Below are positions 3,148 through 64,000 of a stretch of DNA of 64,000 nucleotides, piece after piece. Positions within the stretch are counted from its first letter, which is position 1, and each line of letters opens with the position of its first letter. This stretch comes from Podarcis erhardii (taxonomy: Eukaryota): the NCBI GenBank assembly GCA_964252035.1, contig OZ176210.1; one strand, 5' to 3'. The notes under the pieces were generated by a model. The model was not told the origin of the DNA and did no database searches. It saw nothing but the letters and a program-made list of their open reading frames with translations. Position numbers and translations under genes: made by a program.

Positions 3148-4871
3148 ATTTCATAGGATAACTATGAAAAATGCTGGTCTGAAATTAAGAGAGACTTGGA
3201 CAGTTGGACAAAATTGAAGCTTTCTTTGTTAGGCCGAATTGCTGCTATTAAGATGAATGTATTGCCAAAAATGTTGTTTTTGTTTCAAACATTACAGATT
3301 GTGGACAAGACGGAGTGCTTCCGGAAGTGGCAGAAAGATATCTCTAAATTTGTCTGGCAGGGCAAAAAGCCCAGAATTAAGTTTAAGATATTAACTGATG
3401 CGAAAGAAAGAGGGGGTTTTGCCCTGCCAGACTTAAAGTTGTACTATGAAGCCGCAGCTTTCTGCTGGCTAAAAGACTGGCTACTTCTCGAAGACACTGA
3501 TGTACTGGATTTGGAAGGTTTTAACAATGCTTTTGGTTGGCATGCATACTTATGGTATGACAAGGTTAAGATCAATAAGGCCTTTAAGAACCATATTGTC
3601 AGGAAAGCAGTATTTAATGTCTGGACAAAATACAAAGACTTATTGGAAAACAAAACTCCAAGGTGGCTTTCACCTATGGAAGCTAAGGCCCGAAAAAGAC
3701 CCAATATGGAGGCCAAATGGACAAAATATTGGGAAATATTAGAAAAAGATGGAGACAATTGGAAATTGCAGAGTTTGGATAAAATGAAGGACAAAGTGCG
3801 AGACTGGTTACATTATGCTCAGATTAAAGAAGTCTTTAAAAATGACAAAAAGCTAGGGTTTCAGGTGGAGAAATCGAAATTGGAAACAGAATTGTTGGAA
3901 CCAAAAACTAAGGTACTTTCAAGAATGTATAACTTGCTGTTAAAATGGAATACACAAGATGAAATGGTTAAATCAGCTATGATAAGGTGGGCACAGGACA
4001 TTGGGTATAATATTATGTTTGAGGACTGGGAAAGGTTGTGGACCACTGGGCTGAACTTCACTGCATGTAATGCTTTGAAGGAAAATGTAATGAAGATGAT
4101 ATATAGATGGTACATGACCCCAGTTAAACTTGCCAAGATATACCATTTGTCTGATAATAAATGTTGGAAATGTAAAGAAAATGAAGGAACATTCTTTCAC
4201 CTCTGGTGGACCTGCCCTAAGGTGAAGGCCTTCTGGGAAATGATATATAATGAGCTGAAAAAGGTATTTAAGTATACCTTTACCAAGAAACCAGAGGCCT
4301 TCCTTCTGGGCATTGTCGGCCAGAAGGTGTTAAAGAAGGACAGAACATTTTTTATGTATGCAACAACGGCAGCAAGGATACTCATCGGTAAGAATTGGAA
4401 AACCCAAGAACTACCCACACTGGAAGAGTGGCAGATGCAACTGATGGACTATATGGAACTAGCTGAGATGACTGGCAGAATCCGAGACCTGGGAGAGGAG
4501 AGGGTCGAAGAAGATTGGAAGAAATTCAAGATTTATTTTAAAAAATACTGTAATTTGGTTGAATGTTAAGAAAGGATGCTAGATCATAAATAATTGTGCA
4601 CCACTAAAATAGAAGGAATTAAGATGATAAGTAAATTTGAGGAAAAATTATAAACCTATTGGAGAATTTATAGATTATATTTAAATGAATTTGACACAAG
4701 AGTGTAAACAAGATGATAAATTGCTGGCAAGAATTGAAAATGATGCAAATGAGAGCGGGAGGTGTGAGGGAGTCCATAGATGTCAAGAAAAGATGTTATG
4801 ATATATGTTATGCTGTTTTTATTTTTGCATTTATGTTTAAAACCCAAATAAAATATATTTAAAAAAAACAA
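3148..4871 (+). mobile_element. 5'-truncated L1-clade LINE (ORF2 C-terminal half, 3'UTR, A-rich tail)
   Basis: Open frame 3157-4569 with L1 ORF2 motifs (LSLLGRIAAIKMNVLPK, GGFALPDLKLYY, CWKC...HLWWTC zinc knuckle); AATAAA 4847-4852 and A/AAC tail; identical 20-bp flanks CAACATCATTTTATGTTCTT at 3128-3147 and 4872-4891. Confidence 0.93.
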
Positions 4872-7439: not shown

Positions 7440-9520
7440 ATAACACACCCACCGTCAACATTCATACTAGCGAAAGCTGGCGTGTCCTGGTGAGGCGCAA
7501 AGCGGTTGTGAAATGCAGCTGTCGGGAGAGCCTCCAGCAGCTGGGCTACCATATTTATTCGCACACACCAAGTCCACGACTCGCCATTGCTTTTCCATAG
7601 GCACAAGGGCCGTGGCGACGGGTATTGTTATTTTGGGAGGACGGTGAGGTTATTGTGCTTTTCGGGTACGGTGCAAGTCCCTCAGCGAGGGAGGAGCAGG
7701 AGGCTAAGCCTGACGTGCGCTGCCTGCGTGGCTTGAATAATAGGAACATTGTTTGAGGGAGAGGGATAATGAAGGCGCTCCTGGCAGGCGGGAGAGGGAG
7801 AAACTGGAGAAAGGAGGCAACCTGGTCGGGCCGGAGACAACAGGAAGGGGGAGGGAAGGACTGTGCAAACGGCTCCGGCAGCCCCCCCCCCCGCTCCGTC
7901 GCCTCCCCATACCCAGGGCTGGCGTCGGAGAGGAGGAGTCGCCGTCTGTGCCGGGGCGCAGTGTATGTGTGTGTCGTGAGGGGGGGAGAAGAGAGTCCTG
8001 GAGGCGGGGCAAGAGCTGAGCATCCGGAACGCAGCTGCCGCCTCCTCCTCCTCCTCGTCGTCGTTGTCGTCGCCGCCGCAGCGGCTTGTAAACAGATCCG
8101 GGGCCTCCACGTGACCGCCTCAAGTACCTGTGTGAGGGGACTGTATTGACTTGCCTCTCGTATTGTCTCCGGCAGGCAAGCAGCAGCAGCAGCAGCAGCA
8201 GCAAGAGGAGCCGCCGCCGCCGCCGCCGGGCTCATGACAACAAAGCCGCGCGAGGGGAGCGCGCGCTGCGGCGGCAGCTGCAGCAGCTGCAGTTGCTGAC
8301 GACTCTCTGGCGCCTTCTTAGCCTATCCCCCTCGTCGTCCCTTCCCCTCGCATCCCACCCGGCCCCGCCAGTAGCGCATCCTTCCCTTCACGTTCCCTCC
8401 CTCCCTGCCCGCCGCCGCCGCCGCCGCCGCCGCCGCTAAAATGGCTGAGGCTGCTGGGCAGTGACTTGAGCGCCCTCCCGGTTTGGTGGTCGTGAGGAAG
8501 CAAAGGAGCCGGGCGGCGGCGGGCAGCGGCTGCCCCCCCCCCCCGGCCACCATGAGCACCTTCGCCTTGGAGGAGACCCTGGAGGCGGACTGGGTGGCCG
8601 TGAGGCCTCACGCCTTCCACGAACGGGAGAAGCACAAGTTCGTCTTCATCGTGGCCTGGAATGAGATCGAGGGCAAGTTCGCCATCACCTGCCACAACCG
8701 GACGGCGCAGAGGCAGCGCAGCGGCTCCAGGGAGATCCGCCGCGGGGGGAGCCCCGGCCTCGAGCACCAGCGAGCCGCCGCCGCCGCCGCCTCTTCCTCC
8801 AAGGTGCCCGGGAGCCCCACCGTACGCAGGAGCAGCCCGGCCTGGGGCACGGCTGAGCCTGGCCAAGCCAGGAGCTCGCCGGTTTCTCCCGCCCGAGCCG
8901 AGCCGTTGCCTAGGAGCCCCGGCAGCCGAGTGGCGGAGGCGCCGCCGCCGCCGCAGAGGAGCCCGGCCCGGGCGCGGAGCAGCCCTGCCCGGAGGCCTCA
9001 GCCTGCTGCGAAGGCGCCGCTCAGCCCCGCGGCCTGTGCGGCCGAGGACATCGAGGTGCTGGAGCTGGGCAAAGACGAGCCTGCGGGAGGCGCCGCTTTC
9101 CTGCTGCCGTCCCCGCTCGCCGGGCCTGCGGCCGCCTCGGAGACCGAGGCGCCGTCGGGCGAGGAGTGCAGCTGGGCCGGCCTCTTCTCTTTCCAGGACC
9201 TGCGGGCCGTGCATCAGCAGCTGTGCTCGGTGAGCTCCGAGCTGGAGCCCTGCTTGCCGGTCCTTCCCGAGGAGCCGTCGGGCATGTGGACGGTCCTCTT
9301 CGGAGCTCCGGAGATGTCGGAGGAGGAGATGGACGCTTTGTGCTGCCGGCTGCAGGTCTACCTGGGCCACTGCCTGGACACCTGCGGGTGGAAGATCCTC
9401 TCCCAGGTGCTCTTCACCGAAACGGACGACCCGGAGGAGTATTACGAGAGCCTGAGCGAGCTGCGGCAAAAGGGTTACGAGGAAGTGCTGCAGCGGGCCC
9501 GCAAGCGCATCCAGGAGGTG
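7440..9520. promoter_or_regulatory. CpG island / JMY promoter and first exon
   Basis: Sharp rise in GC and unmutated CpG dinucleotides against the AT-rich flanks; spans the JMY start codon; contains an E-box (8107-8116) and a YY1-like AAAATGGC (8438-8445). Confidence 0.85.
8552..9517 (+). CDS. JMY: JMY coding exon 1 (junction-mediating and regulatory protein; p53 cofactor / actin nucleator)
   Basis: gccaccATG Kozak at 8552. Translates MSTFALEETLEADWVAVRPHAFHEREKHKFVFIVAWNEIEGKFAITCHNRTAQRQRSGSRE...YEEVLQRARKRIQE, matching the vertebrate JMY N-terminus including the DWVAV LIR-type motif. Donor GAG|GTGAGA at 9518; 966 nt, phase 0. Confidence 0.97.
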
Positions 9521-11276
9521 AGAAAGGCCCCCAGTGCTGATAAAATAGAAACCCTTCAACCCCATCCTGAGCATGCTTACCTGGAAGCAAGTTCCCCTGA
9601 GTCCCATGCAACTTACTCTCAGTTTAAGCTTTCGTTGGATTTCTGTCTCCAACTCTGCTGCTGACCTGACTATATTTTCATGTAGTGTCTTTATGGGGGA
9701 AAATAAGACTTTGGAGAAGGGCAGAAAGATGCTAAAGGCTGAATCCAATGCATTATATATATATATATAGCCAGTCACATGTGCTTCCAAGTAAACTTCC
9801 AGAGGATCTGGCTTTCTGTATCTAAGGCCCTTTTTGTATCTTTCCAAAACTGGTGTATTCTTATACAGTACTTACTGGTATCTTGACTTTTTAAGGAGGA
9901 GCCATATGTTTTTATTTTAACTGGCTGGGTCAGTGGGGTGGGTGGGTACTGGACTTGACCATGTTTACTCTGGTACTTGGATATGTTTGCCAGTTATTCT
10001 GCTAGCTAGGCACTATTCCTAATACAAGGAAATGGATTGTAATAAAATCAGTCAGAACTAAATTGTCCTGTCAGATTTACATCTAAGATCAGCACCAGTG
10101 TGAGTCAATATCTTCTGTTCACCTTGTGCATTCTTGATTTATAGTTGGTGGTCGATACATCAAACAATACTTCACATTTTTTTTAACTGGGCAAAAATTA
10201 CATGCATCATTTTGCAACAGATACTGATTTTTTAATATATATTTCCATTTAGGATGAAATCATATTATTAGTGAACTTAATGAGGAATATAATTAGTGAA
10301 TGATGTTTCCAACATTGTCAGTTTTGAAACAGAGGGCCAACATTTTGCCCACAGTATTTTGACTCTGAGTTTGATCTTTGTTATCCTGTTGTGTGAATAC
10401 CTCACGAGTCTGTCTAGTTGTGCTTTTCATGAAGATATATATTTACAGTATTTGGAATAAGAGGTTGGGTAAGGACCAAAAATAGTCTCACTCATTTCCC
10501 AAGTAACTAATTACTCTTGTTTGCCCAACATGCTTGTCAAGTGAAACTTTGCAGCATGATGTGAAGGCCATGCTTGGCTTGAATTAAGTGTGATTCTAGA
10601 GCCATTGGCTTGGCTTGGCTGCTTCAGAGTTCTCCTGATGATTATATGCCTTTTATTGTATGGTGGCATTTGTAGGAAATGCTGGTTGTGGTTATTTTTA
10701 GAAAAGGTGTGATTTGATTCATTTATTTTTTAATAATCTGCATGGATTGAAGGCTTCTAACTTTAGTGAAAATCTGTTGTATTTGTGATTTAGTGTTAAT
10801 TGGTGTTCATTTTACATTTAGTTGACCTGGGAATGCTGTTGCCAGGGTAATGAATAGTTACTAGTTTAGGTCAAAATTCAATGCCTTCTGTGTTTCCTCT
10901 TTCTTTTTTGGTTTTTAGGGCCATATACAACTGTTCAGCTTCTCAAAACAGAGTTGCCACAGGTATATTCTTTTGGCATGAATATATGCAAAACTTCACT
11001 TCTGACTTTTTTTTAAAAAAAAAAGGATGGTGGAAGACACCTGGTTGCCTAAGTGCCTAAAAACTTTGACACTGAAAGCTAGGAAAGAGTAATTGTTATC
11101 ACCCGTAGTAACAAGCAAGCAACTTCAGTAAAATTTCAGTTCCTCTACTGTAGTTCTGTGGGACAAATACATTCTGGAGAAAGAGAAAATGTGAGGCAGA
11201 TACATGAATAGGTGAGATGCTAAGAACCAAAGACAAATGTGTGGAACCTTCCAAAATAATGTGAAGTAACCTGTAG

Positions 11277-21025: not shown

Positions 21026-21199
21026 CTCCTAGAGAAACACAAGAATACAGAAAGCATGGTAGAGCTGCTTGAACTATATCAAATGGAAGATGAAGCATAT
21101 AGCATTCTTGCTGAAGCAACTACAGAACTTTATCAGTACTTACTGCAGCCATTCCGAGATATGAGGGAGCTTGCAATGCTCAGAAGACAGCAGATAAAG
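21026..21199 (+). CDS. JMY: JMY coding exon 2
   Basis: cttag|CTC acceptor; LLEKHKNTESMVELLELYQMEDEAYSILAEATTELYQYLLQPFRDMRELAMLRRQQIK; AAG|gtacac donor; 174 nt. Confidence 0.96.
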
Positions 21200-21801
21200 G
21201 TACACATTAACATAAATCTTATAATTTAAATTTATTTATTTTGAAAAATAACAAAGATAAAATGAATATAAATCTTAAAAGGTGTTACATGTGTTTATGC
21301 ATAATCTGTTTTTGTCTTTTAGAAATTTTGGTCATTTTCAAATCACCTTGTGATGGTTCTGTTTGAAATTCTTGAAAGTTTGAGTTCTGTATTTACTTGT
21401 ATGTTCTGCCTGTCTTATCTATCTGATCTATAATTAGGGCATGGATTTGGAGAGTTTGGAATTTTTATTTGGAATTCCATATTTTTATTGCTTTTATTGA
21501 TTGATCTAAATTCTGTGCTGCTTTCCTGTTAAAATATCCAGAGTGACTTAGAATAAAAATGGGCTCAGTTAAAACAATAAAAACAGTACAGGTAGCAGCA
21601 GCCATATGCAGCAGAATAGAGATCTAGTAAAAGTCAGGTGAACATCTGAAAATGGCAGAACCACAGGCCAGTGACTAGAAGTCTTGAAGAATAAAAAGCC
21701 ACTGACCTGCTGTGTAAAAAAATAGTTGTGTTTGGGTGCCAAATCAGAATGGGTCCAGATAGTTAATGGTGCTTATAAAAGCTAAAATTGATCCTCTACC
21801 A

Positions 21802-23366: not shown

Positions 23367-24547
23367 GCCTACATGTTTCAAAATATTTTCCTACAGTTGC
23401 CTCTTTCTTTGAACAAAGGCTGGAATCATGTAGGAGACACCAGAGTCCATTTTAGAAGTTGGATTTAAATTTTAATAGTCATGCAAGCACATTTCATATA
23501 GAAAATCCTGAAGCAATACTAAGATCCTTTAAAAGACAGTTCCGTGGATGTACTTTGTGAACCAGCCAATCAGATTTTCCGTAGTGCGAATTCATCTACC
23601 AGTGTAATAAAATCTTTGTTAAAGCAAAGATAAGTTCATGTTTCATTTTGCTCTTGTCCTTTGTACAAGGAATAGTTAAAAATTTAGGCACTCTAAGATT
23701 TTTATAGTGTTCTAAGGATAGGGAACACAGGGTATAATTGTGTTTAATGAGTAAGATTGCTTTCCTAATACGCCTTTTTATAAATCTCTTCAAACCAAAT
23801 CAGTTAGATCATTTAAGGGGTAGAGATTGGGAGATATGCCAAAATATGCTTTTAATATATGAATGGCATGTTATCCATAGTAACATACTAATCATTTTCA
23901 TTTGTGAGGGAAAACAGCCCAAGTTAAGCATGCTCTCCCCACAGAAAAGTGATATATTACAATTGCAGACCCCTGCAAAAGCTTTTCATTAGAAGTAGGG
24001 TGAGAGTTTTGTGCAACTGCTCATGTGATACTTGATTTGCAGAGTGCCTCTCAGTACAAATTATGTCTTGGAAATTTCTCCTTCCAGACAGTAGCATTCT
24101 GTGGGAGCTTTGATTGCTTGTGAATTCTCAGCAAGAAGCTGTATTCACCTTTCCAAACCTTTATCTCAAGGATGGCTCTCATCCTATTACCTGAGTCCTT
24201 CCATTGGTAGACAACAGATGTCCAAGTAAATGAGTGTTCTGTGACTGAGCTTGTCACTTCAAAAAGTCCCTTTCTCATACTTGGATCCAATGCAAATTTA
24301 TGAAGATTTACCCATGCTGTAATGCTTACTCAGATTAGTAGCTAAGAGCAAATAATTTAGGAAACATTTGCTCATGAGATTTATGAGTTATTTCTTAGCA
24401 GTTCCGGAAAGCACATGATCATTCATCTGTCCTTCCCAGTTAAATTATTTCATCTATATTATAATTGTTAAACAGTTTAACTTTTTGAAGTTTTCTATCT
24501 AGCCTTTAAGCTTTGATGGTGGATATAATGGACTGATCTATTTTCAG

Positions 24548-24698
24548 ATATCCATAGAGAATGATTACCTGGGACCTAGAAGAATTGAGAGTCTACAGAA
24601 AGAAGATGCAGACTGGCAGCGGAAGGCCCACATGGCTGTGCTTTCTATTCAAGACCTCACTGTTAAATATTTTGAAATAACAGCAAAAGCACAGAAAG
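24548..24698 (+). CDS. JMY: JMY coding exon 3
   Basis: ttttcag|ATA acceptor; ISIENDYLGPRRIESLQKEDADWQRKAHMAVLSIQDLTVKYFEITAKAQK; AAG|gtattg donor; 151 nt. Confidence 0.96.
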
Positions 24699-25733
24699 GT
24701 ATTGGAGTTTTACTACTTCATGTTTTGCAATAAAGGCCTTTTAAGAACTAGAAAGTCTTATTTACATGATCCAAGGTCTTATAGCTGCACCTTCTTCCTT
24801 TGTCTCAAATCACTGTCATTGCTTTTTTATGAATTGCTAGTAGAGATGGACAAATAAGACTTCATCTGGTTTGTGCCACTTTTCACATGTATTCATCTGT
24901 AGATTAAATCTGCTCTTCCATGTGGATTATAAAAATCAGTACAGGTTTAGCACATTCTTTTCATTAAGTACTTACAATATGAAGTCTAACATTACATCAT
25001 CATCATCATCATCATCATTATTATTATTATTATTATTATCCCACATACTAGCTGAGTGGGATGGCCAGAAAAAATGCATTAAAATGGGTCCAGTGTTGCC
25101 CATGCTAGCAATGGAACATGATTTTGTTTAAGGAAAGAAGGCAAGAGAGTGAGAGAGATGGTATTGTACCCAGGGAGGCAGCCATATCTTTTCCTTGCAT
25201 TGTAACGGAGAATATCCCAGAACATTGTATGGAAAAAGATGGCGGGCTGCCTCCATGGAGACAGTCATGCTGCTTTTGTACAAAGTCCATTGTACAATAA
25301 GGACAATGTGGATTGATGCAATGGTTCTTGGCTCTTGAAGCTTAATCTTTTTGGAAAAGTGAGAATCTTACAGTGTTTCCTTCCTTCCTCAAAGTCTTCA
25401 AAAACATTTACATGATGGTTCATAGCAGTAGGGAAAGGGGCTGTCATAGGCTTTAATTGAGTCATTTCCTTCCTCCTCACCTCTTCTTTCTCCCCCTCCC
25501 TCCTAGGATAGGATTTCTATGCCTTATAGTGCCTTATAGCCACTTCTCAGATTGGAAGGCCCTGATATTCACTTGTGCACCCTTCTGTCCTATTCCTTAT
25601 TGTGTTCATAGCCTCCCAATTACTCAACTCTTTCTCAGTCTTGAGGTATTGAGATTTCACACTAAATTTGGAGAAATCCCTTAGATTTTTAAAAAAACAT
25701 GCTTGGTTTGTGATTCGATTTGTAAACTAAGTA

Positions 25734-26069: not shown

Positions 26070-26953
26070 TACTTGTATGTTCAGACTGAAAATGATATCG
26101 ATGTTGAAAGATCTTGACATTACTGCTGCTATACGCTGCTAACAAAGTGAAAAGGGATTTTGTAAACTTCTAACATATATGTTAGTCTGTTCCTGTTAAT
26201 TAATGTTCCTGTGAATTAATTAATTAATTAATTAATTGTTCTTGTGAATTAATTAACTTGTAGAATGATGCAGTATAAGAAGCAGTGTAATAGCTCATTC
26301 ACAAGTAAAACCTTTGTGAAATGTATCCTTGTTCTCAGGATCTGTCACTAAACAGCAAAACAGGTTATCTGAAAATACTTATTCAAAATTTGCTAGACAC
26401 GTGAAACATTGTGCCGTTTCAGTCCTCCATCTTGATTCAAAATGGCATCCAAATGGTGACAAAGTTTGCTGCCCTCAGGAACCCTGTGCTGTGTTTGGTG
26501 ATGTTATGTTGAGATGCGCCTGAACCTATACCAAAAAGGTTCAACCAAATTCATGTTTTGGCCACCATCTTGATTCAGAATGGCATCTGGCATCCAAACA
26601 TTGACAAAGAGTGCCACCCTCACCTCGGAAACTCTTGTGCCAAGGTGTCCGAATGTATAGCGAACAAATGGACAGACATACAAATCATTTTCCAAAATAT
26701 ATAGTAGCTTTTGGATATACCATACCTTTACTTTAGGAGGCAGTAAATTAATTTATGTCCATACCTGCCCAACCTTAGTCCCTGTAAAAGTTCTCTGTCT
26801 AATCCTGTGTAGGATTATGCCCTTGGCTAAGCAATAAAGATTTTGTTTTATTTCTGTACACAAACATATGCTTAAGTCCAAGCTTTGTAATGAAATATGA
26901 AGCATTTCCATATATGACAAATCTGCTGTTTTCTAAAAAATCATTTTTTACAG

Positions 26954-27123
26954 CTGTATATGATCGAATGCGAGCAGACCAGAAAAAGTTTGGTAAGGCA
27001 GCTTGGGCAGCAGCAGTGGAACGAATGGAAAAGCTTCAGTATGCAGTGTCTAAGGAGACTTTGCAGCTTATGAGAGCAAAAGAAATCTGTTTGGAACAGA
27101 AGAAACATGCTTTAAAAGAAGAG
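26954..27123 (+). CDS. JMY: JMY coding exon 4
   Basis: tttttacag|CT acceptor; (A)VYDRMRADQKKFGKAAWAAAVERMEKLQYAVSKETLQLMRAKEICLEQKKHALKEE; GAG|gtaatt donor; 170 nt, phase consistent with exon 3. Confidence 0.96.
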
Positions 27124-30100
27124 GTAATTTTTTTAGAGAAATTAAATTTTTAAAAGACAAAAATAAATTGGTTTGTTACCTCAAACTGCTTTGAAAACAA
27201 TATTAAATCCGCTACTACATTGACTTATTGGAGAGACTGGATTTTTTTTTTTTAACATAAATGTATTTATCTTTCAAGAATGCAGGAGCTAATTGTGATT
27301 TACTTTCTATGAAAATTTGAATGGCAAGATAGTATGAATATTTCCCCCCACTTGCATAGAAAAAAATCACTTCAAAATATGGAGTGCCCCATTTGTGATT
27401 AGAATATTGTGACACTCACCACATTTTCTTTCTTCCTTTTCTTCCCACTGTCTCCATGTTGTCAAAATGCAGCTTATAAGCTCTTGAGTCAGGAGCAATC
27501 TTTTTGATTATAAAACTCTGTGAAGTGGCCATACACATTGATGGCATCATTTAAAACTGTAGTCTCCATTTGCAGCCAGTATAGAAAAATATTGAGCATT
27601 TTCTGTTTTTCCCCAGAGCTCCATTTTAAAAGGAATAACATGAACTGATTTGTACAACTGACTCACTGCAAAATCTGACTTATGTCTCTCTCACTTAATT
27701 GATTCTGATTCTCTTGAACATTTTGAGGGACATTTATCAAAGAAAGTGCTTATTCATGTTGAAATTTATTACCAGACATGCATTACTGCAAAAACTAGCC
27801 CTGAAAGTAAATACTACTTCAGTAATTCATTGGAAGTTTGAAGCACACAAGTTGTTTCAACATGCTTGTCGTGAATTAGTGCATTAGTTATTTTAAATAA
27901 ATGTGCATGCTATTATATGCATAGATTCTATGGGTGACAAGCTAGAGGCCTTCAGTATAACCATGGATTAAGGCTGCTGTTAATAAAACAAGTCAGATGA
28001 TAGAAAAGTAAAAACTGCTGTTTCAGCTCTATTCCCAGTTCTTTTCCCTGCCTCTGCTTTCCTTTTTACTTTTCCATTCCTTGTTTCCTTTCCACCAATG
28101 GTTTTAACTGAGGACAGATTGATGAGGCAGCAAATCTAAGTGGGGAAAAGAGAAGATTTTCCTGATGTCTTGTTTGATCAGCAAAGTCAACAAACACCAC
28201 CTTAGCTTCAGGATTTGATTGTGGTACCCTCCGTCAATTACCAAAGAGGCAGCGCTCTTCAGGTAGCAGAAACCTAATCTTCCTGTCCATGATTATTGCC
28301 ATAGAATTTGCAAAAATACCCCTTTCTGGATCAAGGCTGATTCATTAGACCATGGGTGCCAACTCCCTGGGTGCCCGGGCACCCACAAAATTCCCCATGA
28401 AGGGACCAGGCACCCACAAATTTTGGTGCACCTATGGTCACGGGGCCAAATTAGCACTTCTGCATTAGGCTGTCCTTCCTTCCTAAGGCCAAAGGACAGA
28501 TTTATTTGCCTTTCATTTTCACCCTCTCAGGAGGCTAGATTGTTAAGCCACCATGGGCAGCACACACTTTTTCTGCAGATTAAGGATGGTCTTTCCCACC
28601 TGTCTAAACAAGTAGTTAAACCACATTGTAAAAGAAAGGTGGTAACCCAAATGTCAACAGTTTCCATTTTCCCGTGCCTCTTGGCTATGGCTTACTGTCC
28701 AGGAAGGACTTTGATCGGGGTTGTCACCAGTTCTTTTTTGGACCGGTGGGTACATTTTGAATTTTAAGAGAGTGCTGGGGGCATCAGTCACAAAATTGTT
28801 GCCCGGGGGAGTGGTATAACACAACAAGGTTGTCATGGGGGGCATGCTGTAACAGAAAATTAAGAGAGAGTACTGTCATGGTGAAGCTTTGCCCCTAACT
28901 GTATTTCTATCCTAGAAAATGCTTAACCTATTGAATTTATGCCCACCATACAGCTGCCAAAGGTACAAGAACCCTGTTCCTGCCCCGCAGTGCCAAACCT
29001 AAACCAAAGCCTAGGCTGCCATCCTATACCCACTTAACTGCAAAGAGACTTTTATCTAATTAGACTGTACTGTGGATCCTTAAAGAGTGCCTGGCCTTTA
29101 GCTCTTACACAGCAGGAGACATGCTTATGCTACTTTGCAAAGTTTTAACATCTGCCTTCTGGGAGAGGGGGATTCTTTAACATACACCCATCCTTATTGT
29201 GTAATAGTATTTGCTGAAAATAAATTCTAGGGACTTTCAATTCAAAGCCCAACCCTTCAGTGTTGCTTCACTGCCCAGAGTCTTCACAAAGATAATGATG
29301 GTAAAGGTGTTGCATCAAGTCTGCAAGGTATTCACATTTATTCCTATCTAGACAACCTGTTGGTCAGGTCCCCTTTGTTGCTTCAAGCGAGGGAGGAACT
29401 TGTTACAACACAGTTTGGGGATGGAATTGGATAGTAAACCTCGAGCAACAGCATTGCTATGTGTGTGTGTCAAAGTGATCAGGCCTGAAAAACAGATAGC
29501 TCAGGATATTTCTTTGCACAGGGAATGCAAAGATAGTATCCTGTGGTCTTCCTTTGCAAGGGAATACAAGGACAAACAACCAGACCAGAAATGAAGGCCC
29601 AAAGCTTTATTATTTAAAAATACTTACCCAGTGAGGTGTTCTCTCCCTTGTGAAGATTGACTCTGGAAGAAAAGGTAAATAGAAGCTGGAGTGAAGATAC
29701 TACCCTTCCCAGCACACTAACCCTAAATTCACTCACAGAGGATGGAGTACACCCACACCCCAAGGACCCGAGCTAGAGATCCTGTAAGAAAAAAATAGGA
29801 AAAACATGAGACCTGCGGATACCTGCTGCCTCTTTGGATTTCTGCAGTTTTAAATCTTCTCTGAATTATAATCCTTTATTCAAATTGTAATTCATTGGCT
29901 TCTTCCAACTGGCCTTCTCAGTTCTACCTGATCTTCTCCACCATTGGTTTCTCTGCTCCATATTTCCTTCTCTGAGTTGATATTAAGAGAGAACTGTTTT
30001 TATAGTCATGTGTTGTGGCATACAAAAGTTCTTTCCCATAGAATCTATAATTTCAATTGGCTTGTGAAAACATCATTCTTCTCTGCCAAGATCCAGGTTT

Positions 30101-30480
30101 GAATTGTTTAAATATTGTTCTCTTCGCTTGCATAGGAACATCTTCCATTTGTTTATAGCAAAGTCCACATTGCCAGCTCGCTCATCTGCTAGGCTACATC
30201 TGTTTCTTTGCTTCTTAGCCCTCTTTAAGGGAAATCATTCTCATAAAAACACATATGTAACTCCTGGTTTCCATGAAGTCACTAAGGTTTGTATTATTTC
30301 TTATCAAAGTTGTTACATTCTGTTCTGCAAAGTTCACAAACAAATTTTCAGTCCAACTGGGTTGAAAATGCAACTTTAACTTTCAAAATGATATAATAAG
30401 AATAAAGAGATAAGATGCATGTTCTTAAAAGCAATATAAGTAATGCTTGAACATAAATTTATCTAACTAAGTCAGTTCTT

Positions 30481-30520
30481 GGTATGAGCTTTCGTGTGCA
30501 TGCACACTTCTTCAGATACC
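30481..30520 (-). ncRNA. Minimal type-I hammerhead motif, inverted copy
   Basis: Exact reverse complement of 30522-30561. Confidence 0.75.
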
Positions 30521-30521
30521 A

Positions 30522-30561
30522 GGTATCTGAAGAAGTGTGCATGCACACGAAAGCTCATACC
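30522..30561 (+). ncRNA. Minimal type-I hammerhead ribozyme motif, copy 1 (intact core)
   Basis: GGUAU-CUGAAGA-A-GUGUG(CAUG)CACAC-GAAA-GCUC-AUACC: 5-bp stem I, stem II, conserved core, palindromic AGCU stem III, CUC triplet ending at 30556. Confidence 0.8.
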
Positions 30562-30599
30562 AAGAACTGACTTAGTTGGTCTTTAAGGTGCTACTGGAA

Positions 30600-30639
30600 G
30601 GTATCTGAAGAAGTGTGCATGCACAGGAAAGCTCATACC
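30600..30639 (+). ncRNA. Minimal type-I hammerhead motif, copy 2 (C11.1->G at 30626)
   Basis: Identical to copy 1 except that the stem II closing pair becomes G-G. Confidence 0.7.
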
Positions 30640-32812
30640 AAGAACTGACTTAGTTGGTCTTTAAGGTGCTACTGGAAGGAATTTGTTTTGTTTTGACTAT
30701 GGCAGACCAACACGGCTACCTATCTGTAACATAAATTTATCTAACAAACATGTACTTACAAGGTTGCCAGATACACAAGTTGGGCTCTAGTGCTTCTGCT
30801 TACTGCAGTTGCCAACTGACTAATACAATGTTTAAAGATACAAGATGCATTTTAATTATGACAGTCTAGCCAACAAAATGTGCTTGGTCTCCTGATTTCC
30901 AGCATCAAAGTTGTGCTGTGGGCCAAGTTCCACTCTCGTCACATCCACTGGCTGCCCTGATTGTTTTAGATTCAATATTGCCCCTAGGGGCTCTGGAAAA
31001 GACCATCTAGTTTCCCCTCCAGTCATTTGGCAGCCTCTTTTGCCTTCACTCCATGTTAGCCTATGGACAATACATCAGATCAGCTGAGGAAGGTGTAGGG
31101 GAGAATGAACTAGGCCTCCACAGGGAGTCCAAGCTCCTGTCCCACAAGACTGAGCACATTATGGGAACTCAGAACAAACAGGAGGATTTTTTGAGGTCCT
31201 GTCCAATAGTTTTTGGTGGGTAGGATGTTTTGTTTTGTTTTTGCATTTTTCATTTGGATTCAGTATTTTCGCCAACTGAGCCTCCCTTCCTTCCTAAAGT
31301 GAACTCCTCATTTCACTGTTTGCAGGGAAAATTGCTCTCTTCCTTTTGCCTAAACTCTCTCATTAGAGTGGCCAGGGCATTAACCAGATGTTTGAAGGGC
31401 TCTCACAATATATCTCTAAATAACTTAGCTAATTCAGTAATCTGACTTTCTGTTCATCTTTCATTCCATATCTTTGGGTAAAAAGATGTCCTTCTCTACA
31501 TGGTCTAGATGAATCTAGGTGGTTCAGTGCCTGAATCACTACAGCATATGAGGCTTAGTATCTCCCTTCACCCCTTAATGTTACTGCTCTTTTTACTAGG
31601 GCTGCAGCTACCTCTGCTGCCTGTTCAGATAATGCCTCTTCATTGGAAATGTGCAAGGTCTATATGGGCTACTCCAACCACTTTTACCAAGCATAAAACT
31701 GACAGTGGTTTAGCTGAGGCAATGTTTGGGGGAAAGGTACTTTAAAAGGTTATTCCTGCTTCCTGGTTTTCATGGGTAGATAAGTGTTTCCCGTCCTCAA
31801 GGGCTGAGCTTTGGCACGTCCCATGGTGGCACTGGAGAACTCCTAGACATTATCCAGAGAATGGATCATTGGATATTTGCTATGAATGCTCCTTCTAAAA
31901 TAACTTTGGGAAGACTCCAGGCCCACCTTGGATCTGCCTCTGTTGGCAGCCTTTACCTGCCTCTTTATTTCTGGTCCTGGATATTTTCTCTGGTTCTTGA
32001 ACATCAGGTTTGTGTCATGCCCTATTTAGGGAACTGATGCTTCTCTGACATCTCTTCCTTCTCTGTGTTACACTTTGCAATCTTGCCATAGTGTCCTATA
32101 TGCTGTCATTTTAAAAAAAATGTTTTCAGTGTGCTTTTCTTTTGCTAGATAATTCTGCTTTAACTATTTGTGCTTAAAATTTGGGTCCCTTCTTTGAAAA
32201 TGGCATACTGAAATAACGTTGACTATTGTTGTAGTTCTATCACTCATAAAAGTTGTTAATAACATAATTAGGGATATTTTTGTCCCTTGATTGCATTATT
32301 TAGCAGTCCCTGCTGGATTTTGGGTCCTAATTTGACAATGCGGATGAAGACTTGATGCAAGGAAAGAAAACAAGACTGAGTTTCTATTTTACTTGATACC
32401 AAATACATTTAAACTATTTTTTTAAACCCATGAACACAGTTAGTTTCTTCCTTTAAGCACTTGTATATAAATACATGAGAATATGGGTAGTTATAGTGTG
32501 AAAGGAACAGTGAAGAGTTTTCTTGGAGGCATACCAGATCCTGTTTTGCAGTTCAGCTGCCAGGCCTTGTCTTTGTGATGACAGCTAGAAATGCCAAATC
32601 ATCAAGTAGTCTTTGTAGTTCTCTAAATGTGTAAAACAGCATAGGTACCTAGAATAGAATATTAGGACATTGCATTAAGGGCTAAACTGCATGTTCACAG
32701 GCAAACATTTTCCACTTACTGTAAAAATAGGGCTTTTTTTGGTAACCCAAAAAATTCTTCAATAGATTTCTCCAAAGCTTACCTTTTCAGAGAGCTTCAC
32801 AGCAGGTTTGGC

Positions 32813-32853: not shown

Positions 32854-33780
32854 TTCTTCTTCTTTAAAAACATAGCTTCCTTGTTTGCTCTAGTCAGGTT
32901 TGGTTGTGCGACAATATTAGCAAGGGGAAATGAAAATAATTATGGGGCAGTGTCACTGGTTTACTTGGGAGATTTTCTTTTTGCCATAATTGGTACCAGA
33001 GCAGCAGCCTTTGGGGGCTGTGAAGAGCCCGTTCTGTGATGTCATTGCTGCCTGAAATTCAAGTGCCAAGGGAACATCATGTGCATCGGGGCACCTGAAT
33101 GTGTGCCAGGGAGACTTCCCTCTATACAAATACTGTTGTTCCCATTTCTGCAGTCTGAAAAATTGCCAAAAATGAGGGTGTATTTCATGGGGCAGAAGAG
33201 AAAAAGTGTCCTGTTTTTCTTCAGCCCTTGTTTTATTCCAATAAGCTTTTCGGTGTGAAAATTAATTTCTGTGTGGCTGTCTTTAGTTTTATAAAACAAT
33301 AGTTACACTTAGCATTTTTACAGCTCACACCAAGGGTTCAGTGTGATTATGTACATTTCGGTCATTCCAAAAGGCTTGCAATATAGGCCAATATTATTAT
33401 CCTCATATTGGAGATATAAGTCCCTTTGAATAAAGTGGGGAGAGTTAGATGATGCATATGAAGCTACGGTTTATGTAGCATTAGTATACTTTTTCATTTA
33501 AAATGCCTTTAAATAGTTTTGTTTTTATTTTATTGATGGATTGATTTGAATTTATATTCCGCCCTATAACCAGAGGTCTCAGGGCGGTTCACAGAATAAA
33601 ATCAAATTATAAAACCACAAAGACGTAATTAAAATAAAAACAAACAAACCAATAACCTCCCTACACATAAAGCTCAATAACTTCACAATACTTCTTGATA
33701 GGAGGCTTTGTAAACGTTTTGTGACAGAGTTAAGATTTAATAGGTCATCTTGTTGTAACTATTATATACTTCCTGTTCAG

Positions 33781-33946
33781 ATGCAGAGTTTACAAGGTGG
33801 CACAGAAGCCATAGCCCATTTGGATCAACTTGAATCTGATTATTATGACCTGCAACTTCAGTTGTATGAAGTACAGTTTGAAATTTTGAAGTGTGAAGAA
33901 CTGCTGCTGACAGCACAACTTGAAAGCATCAAAAGACTTATTTCAG
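33781..33946 (+). CDS. JMY: JMY coding exon 5
   Basis: cctgttcag|ATG acceptor; MQSLQGGTEAIAHLDQLESDYYDLQLQLYEVQFEILKCEELLLTAQLESIKRLIS; CAG|gtgaca donor; 166 nt. Confidence 0.96.
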
Positions 33947-34620
33947 GTGACATACATTCATTTTACATGTATATTATTTATAACAATATGCCATAGGCAG
34001 CTGTAGTACAAGTTGGTTATTGAAATTATCCTGTGGCTGCAAATTTCCCACTCCAGTTCTTATGCATATTTACTCAGAAGTGAATCTAACTGTATTCAGT
34101 AGGGCTCACTTCCAGGCAAGTGTGCACAGAACTGTGGCCTTAACTGTTTGGCTTTTGATTTCTTTCTCCTTCTGAGGTATCAAAGATTGTCCCAGCTAGA
34201 GTCAAAATGTTGGATAAATTGAATTTATTATTGAGGGTGATGAGAGATGTAACTTCTGTGTTGAGTGGAGTTTGCCACACTTGGAGTCTGTTTGAGCACC
34301 ACAATCCTTATATCTGTTTGGGAGAAAATACCCCTGTAGCCTTGGTCCCAGTCACCTGTAATTCAATTTCCATTAGTTGCTCCTGTTTCCTGCTCTGGTC
34401 ACACTATAGTTGTGATTTTGTGTGGTATTAGATCAGTGTTGGTGTGTGACTATAACCCTCAAGCCCTTCTGGCTCTGTGACCCATTCCAATATCATTAAA
34501 CAACTTATTTCTACATAATTCTGTTTATCACAACTGAAGGTTGATCTAGATTCTATTGCATTGTGTAGTTTGTGTGTGTGCATGTTTAAAATTATTAAAA
34601 TTGTTAGTATTTTCTAACAG

Positions 34621-34808
34621 AGAAAAGAGATGAAGTAGTGTATTATGATACCTATGAAAGTATGGAAGCTATGCTCGAAAAAGAAGATATGGCAGCATCT
34701 ATACACTTGCAAAGAGAAGAGCTACAGAAATTGCAACAGAAAGTCCGCCAGCTAGAAGCAAGGCGTGGGCGCATTTCAGCCAAGAAAGCCTACCTCAGAA
34801 ATAAAAAG
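34621..34808 (+). CDS. JMY: JMY coding exon 6
   Basis: ttctaacag|AG acceptor; (E)KRDEVVYYDTYESMEAMLEKEDMAASIHLQREELQKLQQKVRQLEARRGRISAKKAYLRNKK; AAG|gtaaaa donor; 188 nt. Confidence 0.96.
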
Positions 34809-39680: not shown

Positions 39681-39776
39681 AAGAGGGAGCAGTTGCAAGC
39701 TGAAGAAGAAAGAAAAAGCTCATGGGTTACTCAGGAACGACAGATAACACTGGACAGACTTCGAACATTTAAACAG
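39681..39776 (+). CDS. JMY: JMY coding exon 8
   Basis: tcattcttag|AAG acceptor; KREQLQAEEERKSSWVTQERQITLDRLRTFKQ; CAG|gtaaat donor; 96 nt. Confidence 0.95.
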
Positions 39777-40349
39777 GTAAATGGAAGAAGGGAGACATTC
39801 TACTGATGCTTCGTAAGTTACACACATACACATACACATACACATACATATACATATACATAGATTGCCCACCAATAATAGCGCCTTTGACACAAGTACT
39901 TGTTCCAGAGAGCATGCATTAGCTATGGCTTTGTGTTGTTTGTATATGTGATGGCAACCATAAATCATTGCTATATAATGTGTGAAACAAGCCTTCTTAA
40001 TTATTAAACTATATTCATATTCACAAGAAAATAGAAAAGAACATTGGAATTATTCTTAGGAAAAAAATGTGCTATACTTCTCTTCATATTAATTAATTCC
40101 CATGTTTATGTTTCTCAATTTACAAGTTAACCTGACAATTTTGAAAGGGTTGAATCATAATTATATGTGAGCAGTTGAGGTTAGCAGTAATAAGTCTCTT
40201 GGCCTGCAATCCTAACCCCACTCACCTGGGAGTAAGTTCCATTGAATTCAGTAGGACTTAATTCTGAGTTTACAGGGTTAAAATTGTGCTGTTAGTCACC
40301 ATGCTTTTGATGCTTGCCTAATTTTTAACTCATTTCCCCCCCTCCTAAG

Positions 40350-40881
40350 CGCTATCCTGGACAGGTAATACTCAAATCAACCAGACTTCGACTGGCCCAT
40401 GCAAGAAGAAAAAGTACAGCCAGTTCAACTTCATGTGCTGATCATCGTCTGTCGCTACCTGTAACTACACAGACTGATGTGGTGGGGCAAGAAAAAAGAA
40501 TACAACCTTTACAAATCCAGGAGTCTAGAAATTTAGGACCACTTGAAGATACTTCACCTCCCTGTGGCGTTATCTCTGAATTTTCTCAGATTCCTTCTCC
40601 TCCTGCTCTTCTCAGTAATGAACTTCAGCCCAATATAGTTAATGAGGCCCCAATGCCTCCTCCTCTTCCACCGCCACCGCCACCACCTCTGCCCACCAAG
40701 GAAGAGTCTACTCAGTGCTCTGAGAAGAGCAGTAGCCCTGTGAAACAACCCAGCATTGAGAAGCCAGCACTGCTGACCACTATAGCACCATCAGCTCATT
40801 TCTTTGATAGCAGCCAGTTGGTCAGTGCCAAGAAGAAACTAAAGAAAATGGGCGATATGGAAGGCTTGCAGAGGAGAAGAG
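40350..40881 (+). CDS. JMY: JMY coding exon 9 (polyproline tract, first WH2 region)
   Basis: cctcctaag|CGC (AAG acceptor); RYPGQVILKSTRLRLAHARRK...PPPLPPPPPPPLP...SAHFFDSSQLVSAKKKLKKMGDMEGLQRRR; GAG|gtaact donor; 532 nt. Confidence 0.93.
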
Positions 40882-42050
40882 GTAACTTCATTTCTCTTGA
40901 ATGTGATTCAGGGAAAAGAAAAAGTAGTTTTCCTTACCTTGAGTAATAAAATTAAAGGGTCTCTACCCCCCCAAGAGAGCATGGCTTTGTGATTTTTGAA
41001 CATGATCTCCCCAAATCATGTTTGAAACTGGGGTGTGTGTGTTTCTTTTAATAGCATTTTGTGATGTTTCCCAGGGGAGGGGGTGTTGGTGGCTTTGAGG
41101 GGGGAAAAAAAGTTTTTACACCTGAAGTAGAACTCTGGATTCCAGCTGGTGGAATTAATGAAAACTCTTGATAACTCTGTTGATGTTTTTATCCAAATTT
41201 TGATTTCTGTTTTGTCAACATTGAACAATGGGAAAGGTGGCGTTGGTATATTTTAATTAATAAATGATGACATTTTCAGTGTCTTGAGTACAGGGTGTTA
41301 GTTCACAGCTCAGAGTACTTATTTTGTACTACTACCAAAAGTTGTTTTTTTTAAACAGAACTTTTAAGAACAAGGTTCCACACCTCTGCCGATAGGAAGT
41401 GGTGTATCTTAGCAGATCTGTGGTTTTTAAATGAATAAACATGATACAGTGGATCTTAAAAATTAAAGGCACAGTCCAATCCATTCCCTAGGTGGACATG
41501 CATGTGTGGTCAGGTAGACCAGGAGGTGTCCAGGTTTGGTTGTTGCCCCTGTACACAAGGGCAGTTGGGTATGTAGAGGTATTGGGTTGGCTGTCTAAGG
41601 AATAGCAGCCTCCTTCAATACCAGCTACATTATCCTAACATAGAAAGTTGAGCCAGATACTTACCGGACATTTTGTGAGAACCAGAGACAACAGTGGGGG
41701 CTCATCTCTTGATGCAGTAGCTTCATTTCACCTTTTGAACTACATAATCCTCCAATTGTTTTGATCTTCTTTCTTATGGGCTTGATTATTGTGATCTGAA
41801 AATAATGTAATTTTTTTTCAGAATTGTAGAAACAATGCATTAGAAATATATAGCAGGGTTTTTTTTAACCTTCCATGTAGGAAATGTGCTTTGTGGGTTG
41901 GGGAACCCAATGGAGTGGAGGTGGAGCCGCAAGGAGGAGGAGAGGAAAATGAGATTTCAGACATTGTTGGCTTTTGTGAATGTCTTGTTGAAATTTCATA
42001 GCATAAAATATGAAAAGTTGCAATGCTTACTGAACTCTGATTTTCTGCAG

Positions 42051-42358
42051 TGAGTTCCCCAATGGATGAGGTGTTGGCTTCCTTGAAACGTGGTAGCTTC
42101 CACCTGAGGAAAGTTGAGCAGAGAAATCTCCCGCCTTTCCCTGATGAAGACGACAGCAATAACATTTTGGCACAGATAAGAAAAGGTGTGAAACTGAAGA
42201 AAGTGCAAAAGGACCTTATGAGAGAATCATTCACAATTCTACCTGATGATGACCCTTTGACACGCAGCATCCATGAAGCACTACGGCGAATTAAGGAAGC
42301 ATCACCAGAGTCTGAAGATGAAGAGGAGAACCTGCCTTGCACAGACTGGGAAAATTAA
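42051..42358 (+). CDS. JMY: JMY coding exon 10 (WH2, connector and acidic WCA end; stop codon)
   Basis: ttttctgcag|TG acceptor; (V)SSPMDEVLASLKRGSFHLRKVEQ...ILAQIRKGVKLKKVQK...EDEEENLPCTDWEN*; acidic tail with terminal Trp typical of Arp2/3 activators. Confidence 0.97.
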
Positions 42359-61693: not shown

Positions 61694-61825
61694 NNNNNNN
61701 NNNNNNNNNNNNNNNNNNNNNNNNNNNNNNNNNNNNNNNNNNNNNNNNNNNNNNNNNNNNNNNNNNNNNNNNNNNNNNNNNNNNNNNNNNNNNNNNNNNN
61801 NNNNNNNNNNNNNNNNNNNNNNNNN
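61694..61825. other. Assembly gap (132 N)
   Basis: Run of n in a HOMER1 intron. Confidence 0.99.
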
Positions 61826-62872: not shown

Positions 62873-64000
62873 TTATTATTTATACCCCGCCCATCTGGCT
62901 GGGCCTCCCCAGCCACTCTGGGCGGCTTCCATAGAAAGCAAAAATACAGTAAAATATCACACGTTAAAAACTTCCCTGAACAGGGCTGCCTTAAGATGTC
63001 TTCTGAATGTCAGGTAGTTGTTTATCGCTTTGACATCTGCTGGAAGGGCATTCCACAGGGCGGGCGCCACCACCGAGAAGGCCCTCTGCCTGGTTCCCTG
63101 TAGCTTTGCTTCTCGCAATGAGGGAACCGCCAGAAGGCCCTCGGCGCTGGACCTCAGCGTACGGGCAGAATGATGGGGGTGGAGACGCTCCTTCAGGTAT
63201 ACTGGACCGAGGCCGTTTAGGGCTTTAAAGGTCAGCACCAACACTTTGAATTGTGCTCGGAAACGTACTGGGAGCCAATGTAGGTCTTTCAAGACCGGTG
63301 TTATATGGTCTCGGCGGCCGCCCCCAGTCACCAGTCTAGCTGCTGCATTCTGGATTAGTTGTAGTTTCCGAGTCACCTTCAAAGGTAGCCCCACGTAGAG
63401 TGAATTGCAGTAGTCCAAGCGGGAGATAACCAGAGCATGCACCACTCTGGCGAGACAGTCCGCAGGCAGATAGGGTCTCAGCCTACGTACCAGATGGAGC
63501 TGGTAAACAGCTGCCCTGGATACAGATTTGACCTGTGCCTCCATGGACTGCTGTGAGTCCAAAATGACTCCCAGGCTGCGCACCTGGTCCTTCAGGGGCA
63601 CAGTTACCGCATTCAGGACCAGGGAATCCTCCACACCTGCCCGCCTCCTGTCCCCCAAAAACAGTACTTCTGTCTTGTCAGGATTCAACCTCAATCTGTT
63701 AGCCGCCATCCATCCTCCAACCGCCTCCAGACACTCACACAGGACCTTCACCGCCTTCACTGGTTCTGATTTAAAAGAGAGGTAGAGCTGGGTATCATCC
63801 GCATACTGATGAACACCCAGCCCAAACCTCCTGATGATCTCTCCCAGCGGCTGCATGTAAATGTTGAAAAGCATGGGGGAGAGGACGGAACCCTGAGGCA
63901 CCCCACAAGTGAGAGCCCAGGGGTCTGAACACTCATCCCCCACCACCACTTTCTGAACACGGCCCAGGAGGAAGGAGCGGAACCACTGTATGACAGTGCC
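62819..64000 (-). mobile_element. L2-clade LINE, 3' part with intact reverse transcriptase frame, in a HOMER1 intron
   Basis: ORF 62957-63949 stays open to the window edge; RT motifs GVPQGSVLSPMLFNIY, HQYADDTQLY, SRLDYCNSL, HWLPVRFR; 3' tail of (TTA)n at 62819-62883. Confidence 0.92.

Follow-up and report, generated by a model that had tools for sequence, protein, structure and literature searches.

Two minimal hammerhead ribozymes that lie in tandem within an intron, sense to the host gene, could act on the host transcript or could have been carried there as part of something else, and which of the two applies is the question raised by positions 30481-30639 of a 64,000-nt stretch of Podarcis erhardii contig OZ176210.1 (hereafter "the window", meaning the whole stretch analyzed). 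The preliminary description of the locus read the tandem pair as an intramolecular double hammerhead that would cleave the JMY pre-mRNA asymmetrically and thus form a self-cleaving switch in a p53-cofactor gene. The reading that we prefer, with a probability of roughly 85%, is that the ribozyme-bearing terminal module of an abundant Penelope-like element (PLE) was recently inserted, in miniature form, into JMY intron 4, and that the hammerhead motifs are cargo with negligible cleavage.

Three minimal type-I hammerhead motifs are present in 30481-30639, all of them copies of one 40-nt sequence:

30481-30520, minus strand (read from 30520 to 30481): exact motif copy, found by descriptor match
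30522-30561, plus strand: exact motif copy, predicted cut after C30556
30600-30639, plus strand: variant motif copy carrying C30626G, predicted cut after C30634

From 5' to 3', each motif is composed of GGTAT / CTGAAGA / A / GTGTG-CATG-CACAC / GAAA / GC / TC / ATACC, that is, a 5-bp helix I, a CUGANGA box (C3-A9), an extra unpaired A before G10.1, a 5-bp helix II closed by a 4-nt loop and the GAAA box (G12-A15.1), with a palindromic AGCU in the place of helix III and the cut site at C17. Position 30626 corresponds to C11.1, and its change from C to G produces a G10.1-G11.1 mismatch at the base of helix II in the 30600-30639 copy. The preliminary description had recognized this mismatch, along with two plus-strand motifs 78 nt apart and a third on the minus strand, and the sequence bears it out on each point: the offset between the plus-strand copies is 78 nt (TRF: period 78, 2.0 copies, 98% match). 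A search with the core-box pattern returned 3 matches against 0.02 expected, and a strict stem-plus-core descriptor found both intact copies, with no match in 200 random sequences; the 30600-30639 copy fails this descriptor. A chance origin of the motifs is thus ruled out, and the three represent a single insertion event, not three independent occurrences. The helix II strands and loop together form a perfect 14-nt palindrome in each motif (30535-30548, 30494-30507 and 30613-30626), through which the copies can pair with each other.

Metazoan PLEs carry minimal hammerheads (min-HHRs) in which helix I is short, helix II exceeds the canonical 4 bp, a base between positions 9 and 10.1 is unpaired, G10.1 pairs with C11.1, positions 15.2-16.2 are palindromic and a real helix III is missing; they occur mostly in truncated copies, often as opposite-strand pairs, have been reported in reptiles and are expected to act as dimers (PMC4209133). 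At the present locus, 3/3 copies have the CUGANGA box, the GAAA box and, after them, a UH cut site, helices I and II are both 5 bp long, and the extra A lies between positions 9 and 10.1. There is no stable helix III but an AGCU palindrome, and a dimer can be drawn with standard pairs. The G10.1-C11.1 pair is present in the copies starting at 30522 (plus) and 30520 (minus) and is lost in the one starting at 30600 (plus). Judged by these sequence features, the motifs are PLE minimal type-I hammerheads, and the class proposed in the preliminary description holds, with all of the published features present save the G10.1-C11.1 pair in the 30600-30639 copy. The Rfam hammerhead search that had been suggested as a check came back empty: models of types I, II and III, HH9 and HH10 gave no match at the gathering score over the window, nor at E <= 10 on 30350-30800 and 30590-30690. 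Such an outcome is expected of min-HHRs, since they have no helix III hairpin and these models call for one. Metagenomes were scanned for the exact core and for a degenerate stem-II pattern, neither of which produced a match, and no paper containing the motif string was found in the searchable literature.

The host gene was delineated from an ORF at 8483-9664 (plus strand) that matches PF15920 (WHAMM-JMY_N) and has a JMY-type N-terminus at its start, and from tblastn of full-length JMY relatives found by library search, so that the exon limits are approximate:

8552-9517, plus strand: JMY coding exon 1, PF15920
~21032-21202, plus strand: JMY coding exon (tblastn)
~24542-24703, plus strand: JMY coding exon (tblastn)
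~26953-27138, plus strand: JMY coding exon 4, upstream of the insert (tblastn)
~33763-33936, plus strand: JMY coding exon 5, downstream of the insert (tblastn)
~34611-34808, plus strand: JMY coding exon (tblastn)
~39690-39776, plus strand: JMY coding exon (tblastn)
~40347-40880, plus strand: JMY coding exon (tblastn)
42050-42355, plus strand: JMY coding exon (tblastn)

The insert that contains the motifs lies within intron 4, with exon 4 ~3.3 kb upstream and exon 5 ~3.0 kb downstream, and orthologue exons on either side, all on the plus strand, confirm that the two plus-strand motifs are sense to the JMY pre-mRNA, as had been claimed. The exon at 24542-24703 aligns to relatives P0004, P0007 and P0009 and is skipped in the best full-length relative, P0001; it may be alternatively used, or the P0001 gene model may have a gap. 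Each sense unit of the insert starts with a splice-donor-like (C/A)AG + GTATCT (30518-30527 and 30596-30605), which would add two weak cryptic splice-donor candidates to intron 4. About 4 kb upstream of exon 1, a 457-aa open frame (3196-4569, plus strand) lacks any Pfam match, even at E <= 1, and may be repeat-derived or a chance frame.

The insert itself is 260 bp long (30468-30727) and is bracketed by an exact 18-nt direct repeat. Its parts are the following:

30450-30467: left target-site duplication, 18 bp, AACATAAATTTATCTAAC; direct repeat, of which the organism B contig holds one copy only
30468-30520, minus strand: inverted 5'-truncated arm, module positions 1 to ~53-56 (inverted repeat, descriptor match)
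30521: single A separating the two head-to-head element 5' ends
30522-30599, plus strand: tandem unit 1, 78 nt, with the intact motif 30522-30561 (TRF, repeat comparison)
30600-30676, plus strand: tandem unit 2, with the motif carrying C11.1->G (TRF, repeat comparison)
30677-30727, plus strand: non-repeated 3' tail, 51 nt, outside the tandem, with no second copy in the window
30728-30745: right target-site duplication, 18 bp (direct repeat, organism B contig)

The last 3 nt of the inverted arm (AAC, 30465-30467) overlap the left target-site duplication as microhomology, and the inverted repeat, counted with them, pairs 30465-30520 with 30522-30577 over 56 nt at 100% complementarity, with 1 nt between the arms. 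A 5'-truncated partial tandem, an adjoining inverted truncated copy, a tail and a target-site duplication are thus all present, and PLEs typically show extensive 5'-truncation, partial tandems, an adjoining inverted 5'-truncated copy and a tail (PMC8557442). BLAST of the unit and of the tail revealed no further family copies in the 64-kb window, and no parent autonomous element was found there, the sole reverse transcriptase (RT) ORF being without a GIY-YIG match. This ORF (62957-63949, minus strand; 330 aa, RVT_1 E 1.4e-17) is cut by the end of the window, and an N run lies at 61694-61825. It was considered as the parent and rejected, since it matches generic RVT_1 only, lacks a GIY-YIG match downstream and has chordate RT look-alikes; these matches mark it as a probable LINE fragment, with nothing to tie it to the hammerhead element.

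Age and abundance were assessed by aligning contigs of four public sequencing runs to 30250-30950; such contigs show neither RNA ends nor strand, and none of the runs recorded as RNA contained the stretch. In organism B, a sister species, a 4700-nt contig runs unbroken from 30449 to 30728 with one 18-mer only and flanks that differ from the window by ~2.5%. This is an empty site, which proves that the 260 bp were inserted, and the insertion is therefore recent and lineage-specific. Contigs of organism A, which is probably the source of this DNA, do not branch at the outer junctions, and no empty allele is visible in that sample. As to the number of genomic copies, which the preliminary description recommended counting, 8,724-10,664 contigs per DNA run cover the insert, and the summed word depth, which is not a copy number, is ~1-2 million on the insert against ~25 on its flanks. 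These figures point to a family with a very large number of copies, of which the insert is one and which organisms H and I also carry. The 3' end of the family lies at ~30730, behind which 74-98 contigs per DNA run diverge (76 in X15 and 13 in X16, the RNA label of both being a guess), and the tail is among the most deeply covered parts of the insert.

The family varies within the ribozyme itself: G12 (30549) is A in ~12% of the family contigs, and T replaces the cut-site C (30556) in 9-46% of them, the share differing between organisms. Variability in the hammerhead part is only a little below that in the linker. At 30569/30647, the insert differs from the family majority (A), and at 30685, T is common, being the majority in organisms B and I and accounting for ~30% in A. 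Just downstream of the insert, the contig depth over 30802-30873 is 2-9 fold above that of single-copy flanks in organisms A and B (and ~230 in X15, with the RNA label again a guess), which suggests a second, moderately repeated element.

The joints within the insert record how it could have been assembled. Unit 2 and the tail together make a complete module of ~130 nt whose first base is the initial G of helix I; this G is also where unit 1 begins, which extends to module position ~78; and the inverted arm has one end at this G, whereas its other end joins the left duplication over AAC. The tail abuts the right-hand duplication, as priming of a first cDNA there would give, and the AGG that follows the end of unit 1 is common to the module start and the tail start. 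Probably, the insertion proceeded by target-primed reverse transcription at a staggered break, leaving the 18-bp duplication. A first cDNA would have been primed at the tail of the element and run to the 5' end of its template RNA; it would then have switched, across the AGG microhomology, to a second template at position ~78 and run off once more, which would have yielded the 78-nt partial tandem; and the other DNA end would have primed a third cDNA internally, over 3 nt of microhomology, resulting in the inverted arm. The AGG fits a microhomology template switch, and the AAC join fits priming from the second DNA end, which has been observed in vitro for PAc, a lizard PLE (PMC11167929). The hammerhead motifs would have been carried along as cargo.

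The same joints bear on whether the template RNAs had been cleaved. Every one of the three copies has as its first base the initial G of stem I, which precedes the cut site by 35 nt, and no copy starts at the cut site itself. Because three run-offs share this one base, the template RNAs seem to have carried an uncleaved hammerhead. The family contigs agree with this suggestion only in part, as far as the loose-end piles listed are concerned: among these loose ends, the match of many contigs breaks off at 30521-30523 and that of no contig at the cut site, and fewer stop behind 30684-30688 than at 30521-30523 or behind 30730. The order of priming and template switching is what we infer, as is the absence of cleavage in vivo, whereas the analysis directly established the anatomy and duplication of the insert, its empty site in the sister species, the abundance of its family, its intron and strand, and the folding energies.

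To evaluate the fold on which a host switch would depend, the double hammerhead was modelled with helix I strands exchanged between the copies, so that the 5' strand of copy 1 pairs with the 3' strand of copy 2, and the 5' strand of copy 2 with the 3' strand of copy 1, while the two AGCU tetramers make up helix III and each copy folds its own helix II. The resulting structure is fully nested and sterically coherent, with 23/23 designed pairs standard. In this topology, core 1 cuts at C30634 and core 2 at C30556, as the preliminary description had assigned them; a supposed swap of the two copies in that description is ruled out by the same model.

The predicted energies are a different matter. 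Between the inverted arm and copy 1, the pairing gives a perfect 56-bp hairpin of -100.9 kcal/mol, which the preliminary description did not weigh although it listed the minus-strand copy. In the native context (30440-30760), the free fold has -146.1 kcal/mol and the forced double hammerhead -71.5 kcal/mol, for an ensemble fraction of ~3e-52; for the tandem alone (30522-30680), the respective values are -45.2 and -24.1 kcal/mol, with a fraction of ~2e-16. The double-hammerhead fold is thus disfavoured by ~73 kcal/mol in the native context and by ~22 kcal/mol in the isolated tandem, where the predicted ground state has the two palindromic helix-II segments paired with each other. Hence, while the nested topology and the standard pairs of the intramolecular double hammerhead stand up, its predicted occupancy is minute.

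In the JMY pre-mRNA, the inverted arm and copy 1 would zip into the 56-bp hairpin: since the arm is transcribed first in the sense RNA, copy 1 would be captured as it emerges, and copy 2 would therefore be left alone, partnerless and with its helix II damaged by the broken G10.1-C11.1 pair. The minus-strand motif, on the other strand, would be masked by the hairpin likewise. Nearest-neighbour energies ignore tertiary contacts, co-transcriptional kinetics, helicases, unwinding by ADAR and any chaperone effect of the PLE protein, and these modelled values argue strongly against cleavage while falling short of a proof of its absence. Ribozyme cleavage of the host transcript is, on this modelling, expected to be negligible.

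The hairpin could itself be the feature that matters to the host, whether as a substrate for ADAR editing, as a source of small RNAs matching thousands of copies across the family or as a disturbance of intron 4 splicing. The perfection of the 56-bp stem and its predicted stability speak for such a role, as do generic miRNA-precursor models that score on it (e.g. MIR1222, 69.8 bits), but every miRNA match is below the gathering score and reflects shape only, the best being to a plant family, and the insert is of recent origin, organism B having no counterpart of it. We consider a host role of the hairpin unlikely; it is compatible with the explanation of the locus as a PLE mini-insertion. The sub-threshold miRNA-precursor families of Rfam were rejected as annotations of the insert, their scores reflecting only the 56-bp fold-back.

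A second alternative is that the locus is a true non-LTR retrozyme, in which a 78-nt unit is excised through the two hammerheads, circularised by tRNA ligase and reverse-transcribed by the PLE enzymes in rolling-circle fashion. An "active non-LTR retrozyme" has been defined operationally by at least 2 tandem units, each with a complete type-I hammerhead motif whose minimum free energy (MFE) is below -5 kcal/mol, and the reported unit lengths range from 51 to 972 bp (bioRxiv 10.64898/2026.07.22.740005), so that the two tandem hammerhead units found here, with motif MFEs of -10.1 and -7.0 kcal/mol, come within the definition. Against it, the 51-nt tail and the inverted arm lie outside the repeat, and a circle bounded by cut sites cannot supply the tail; the units are bounded not by the cut sites but by a discrete RNA 5' end that lies 35 nt farther upstream; and there are 2.0 units only, with no joint that goes back 78 nt among the joints listed. 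A retrozyme origin is, in our view, very unlikely.

It is highly improbable, too, that the inverted-plus-tandem arrangement is an assembly artefact hiding a simpler, single-copy locus. PLE structures of such layout are known to trouble assemblies (PMC8557442), and the short-read contigs break at 30492 and 30711, with none spanning the internal arrangement, but both outer junctions are crossed by independent organism A contigs of single-copy depth (the left one up to 30492, the right one from 30711), the arrangement matches the canonical PLE pattern, and a one-base difference between the units together with an exactly shared start base would be unusual for a collapse or a mis-join.

What is known of the activity of related ribozymes adds to the energetic argument. 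The single min-HHR motif of a Schistosoma mansoni PLE was not cleaved, and its dimers and trimers cleaved at a low level and mostly at non-physiological Mg2+; a Drosophila virilis variant with an extended helix III showed similarly low cleavage (PMC4209133). The hammerhead of the Anolis PLE PAc was cleaved only with the PLE protein, catalytic mutants left insertion in vitro unaffected, and no public RNA-seq reads begin or end at its site (PMC11167929). Amphibian type-I hammerheads cleave much better as dimers (PMC7229834), and among predicted Xenopus retrozyme dimers, 8/9 gave no product at 6 mM Mg2+, while ~43% of the Xenopus retrozyme copies are intronic (bioRxiv 10.64898/2026.07.22.740005). 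Given these results for PAc, S. mansoni, D. virilis and Xenopus, sense intronic tandem mini-hammerheads are common and, in tests so far, mostly inert.

The switch put forward in the preliminary description, with tandem sense copies forming an intramolecular double hammerhead that cuts the JMY pre-mRNA asymmetrically, is hardly credible, even with an intact core 1, a nested topology of standard pairs, the dimer action expected of min-HHRs (PMC4209133) and the better dimer cleavage in amphibians (PMC7229834) on its side, because copy 1 is sequestered in the hairpin, core 2 lacks G10.1-C11.1, the predicted equilibrium fraction is vanishingly small in context and in isolation, intronic copies are abundant and most dimers assayed inert in Xenopus, and the sister species lacks the insert, which therefore is not a conserved regulator. 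A broader conjecture, prompted by the cleavage of the PAc hammerhead only with PLE protein, is that intronic sense mini-hammerheads are silent by default and cleave host pre-mRNAs when PLE protein is expressed and that, separately, the fold-back feeds anti-family small RNAs; we give it scant credence, but if true, many host transcripts, that of JMY included, would be cut during bursts of retrotransposon activity.

With the mini-insertion as the preferred explanation, the locus is of little consequence for JMY biology, being a recent passenger that is missing in the sister species and whose predicted structure works against cleavage of the host RNA. Its value, modest as it is, lies in a clean and datable example of PLE insertion, with an 18-bp duplication and probable two-end priming and template switching at microhomology. 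The three run-offs at the first base of the hammerhead suggest that the mobilised RNA was uncleaved, which bears on the purpose of hammerheads in PLEs. The operational rule for active retrozymes will, moreover, also catch insertion by-products of this kind.

Among known systems, the HH9 and HH10 intronic hammerheads of amniotes have a helix III that is stable, are recognized by Rfam models and show conservation at orthologous sites. The locus described here has in common with them a hammerhead in sense orientation in a host intron, whereas a stable helix III, an Rfam match and conservation are absent, the orthologous site in organism B being empty. Animal non-LTR retrozymes (PMC7229834; bioRxiv 10.64898/2026.07.22.740005) likewise consist of tandem type-I hammerhead units derived from PLE termini and are often intronic, but the present insert has two units only, an unrepeated tail, an inverted arm and unit boundaries that do not fall on the cut sites.

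PAc, a Poseidon PLE of Anolis carolinensis, is similar in being a lizard PLE whose hammerhead lies close to the start of the module. The inverted arm observed here fits the extension of both DNA strands by the PAc enzyme, which starts reverse transcription internally (PMC11167929), ~90 nt downstream of the cut site; in the present family, the cut site is 93-96 nt from the 3' end. The PAc ORF reportedly begins at stem II and has its ATG 26 bp ahead of the cut site, whereas in the present motif the ATG belongs to loop II and precedes the cut site by 16 nt. Judged by this difference from the published spacing, the family described here is not that of PAc.

The min-HHRs of Cervera and de la Pena 2014 (PMC4209133) share with the present motifs the 5-bp helix I, the boxes, the palindrome and the pairing of copies on opposite strands, and differ in that 1/3 copies here has lost G10.1-C11.1. 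In its architecture, the insert displays the 5'-truncation, partial tandem, inverted truncated neighbour copy and one-end tail that are canonical for PLEs (PMC8557442; Evgen'ev and Arkhipova 2005), although as a miniature of 260 bp without an ORF and with a tail of 51 nt versus the 30-40 nt usually quoted. The insert is one more example of an already known kind of PLE insertion.
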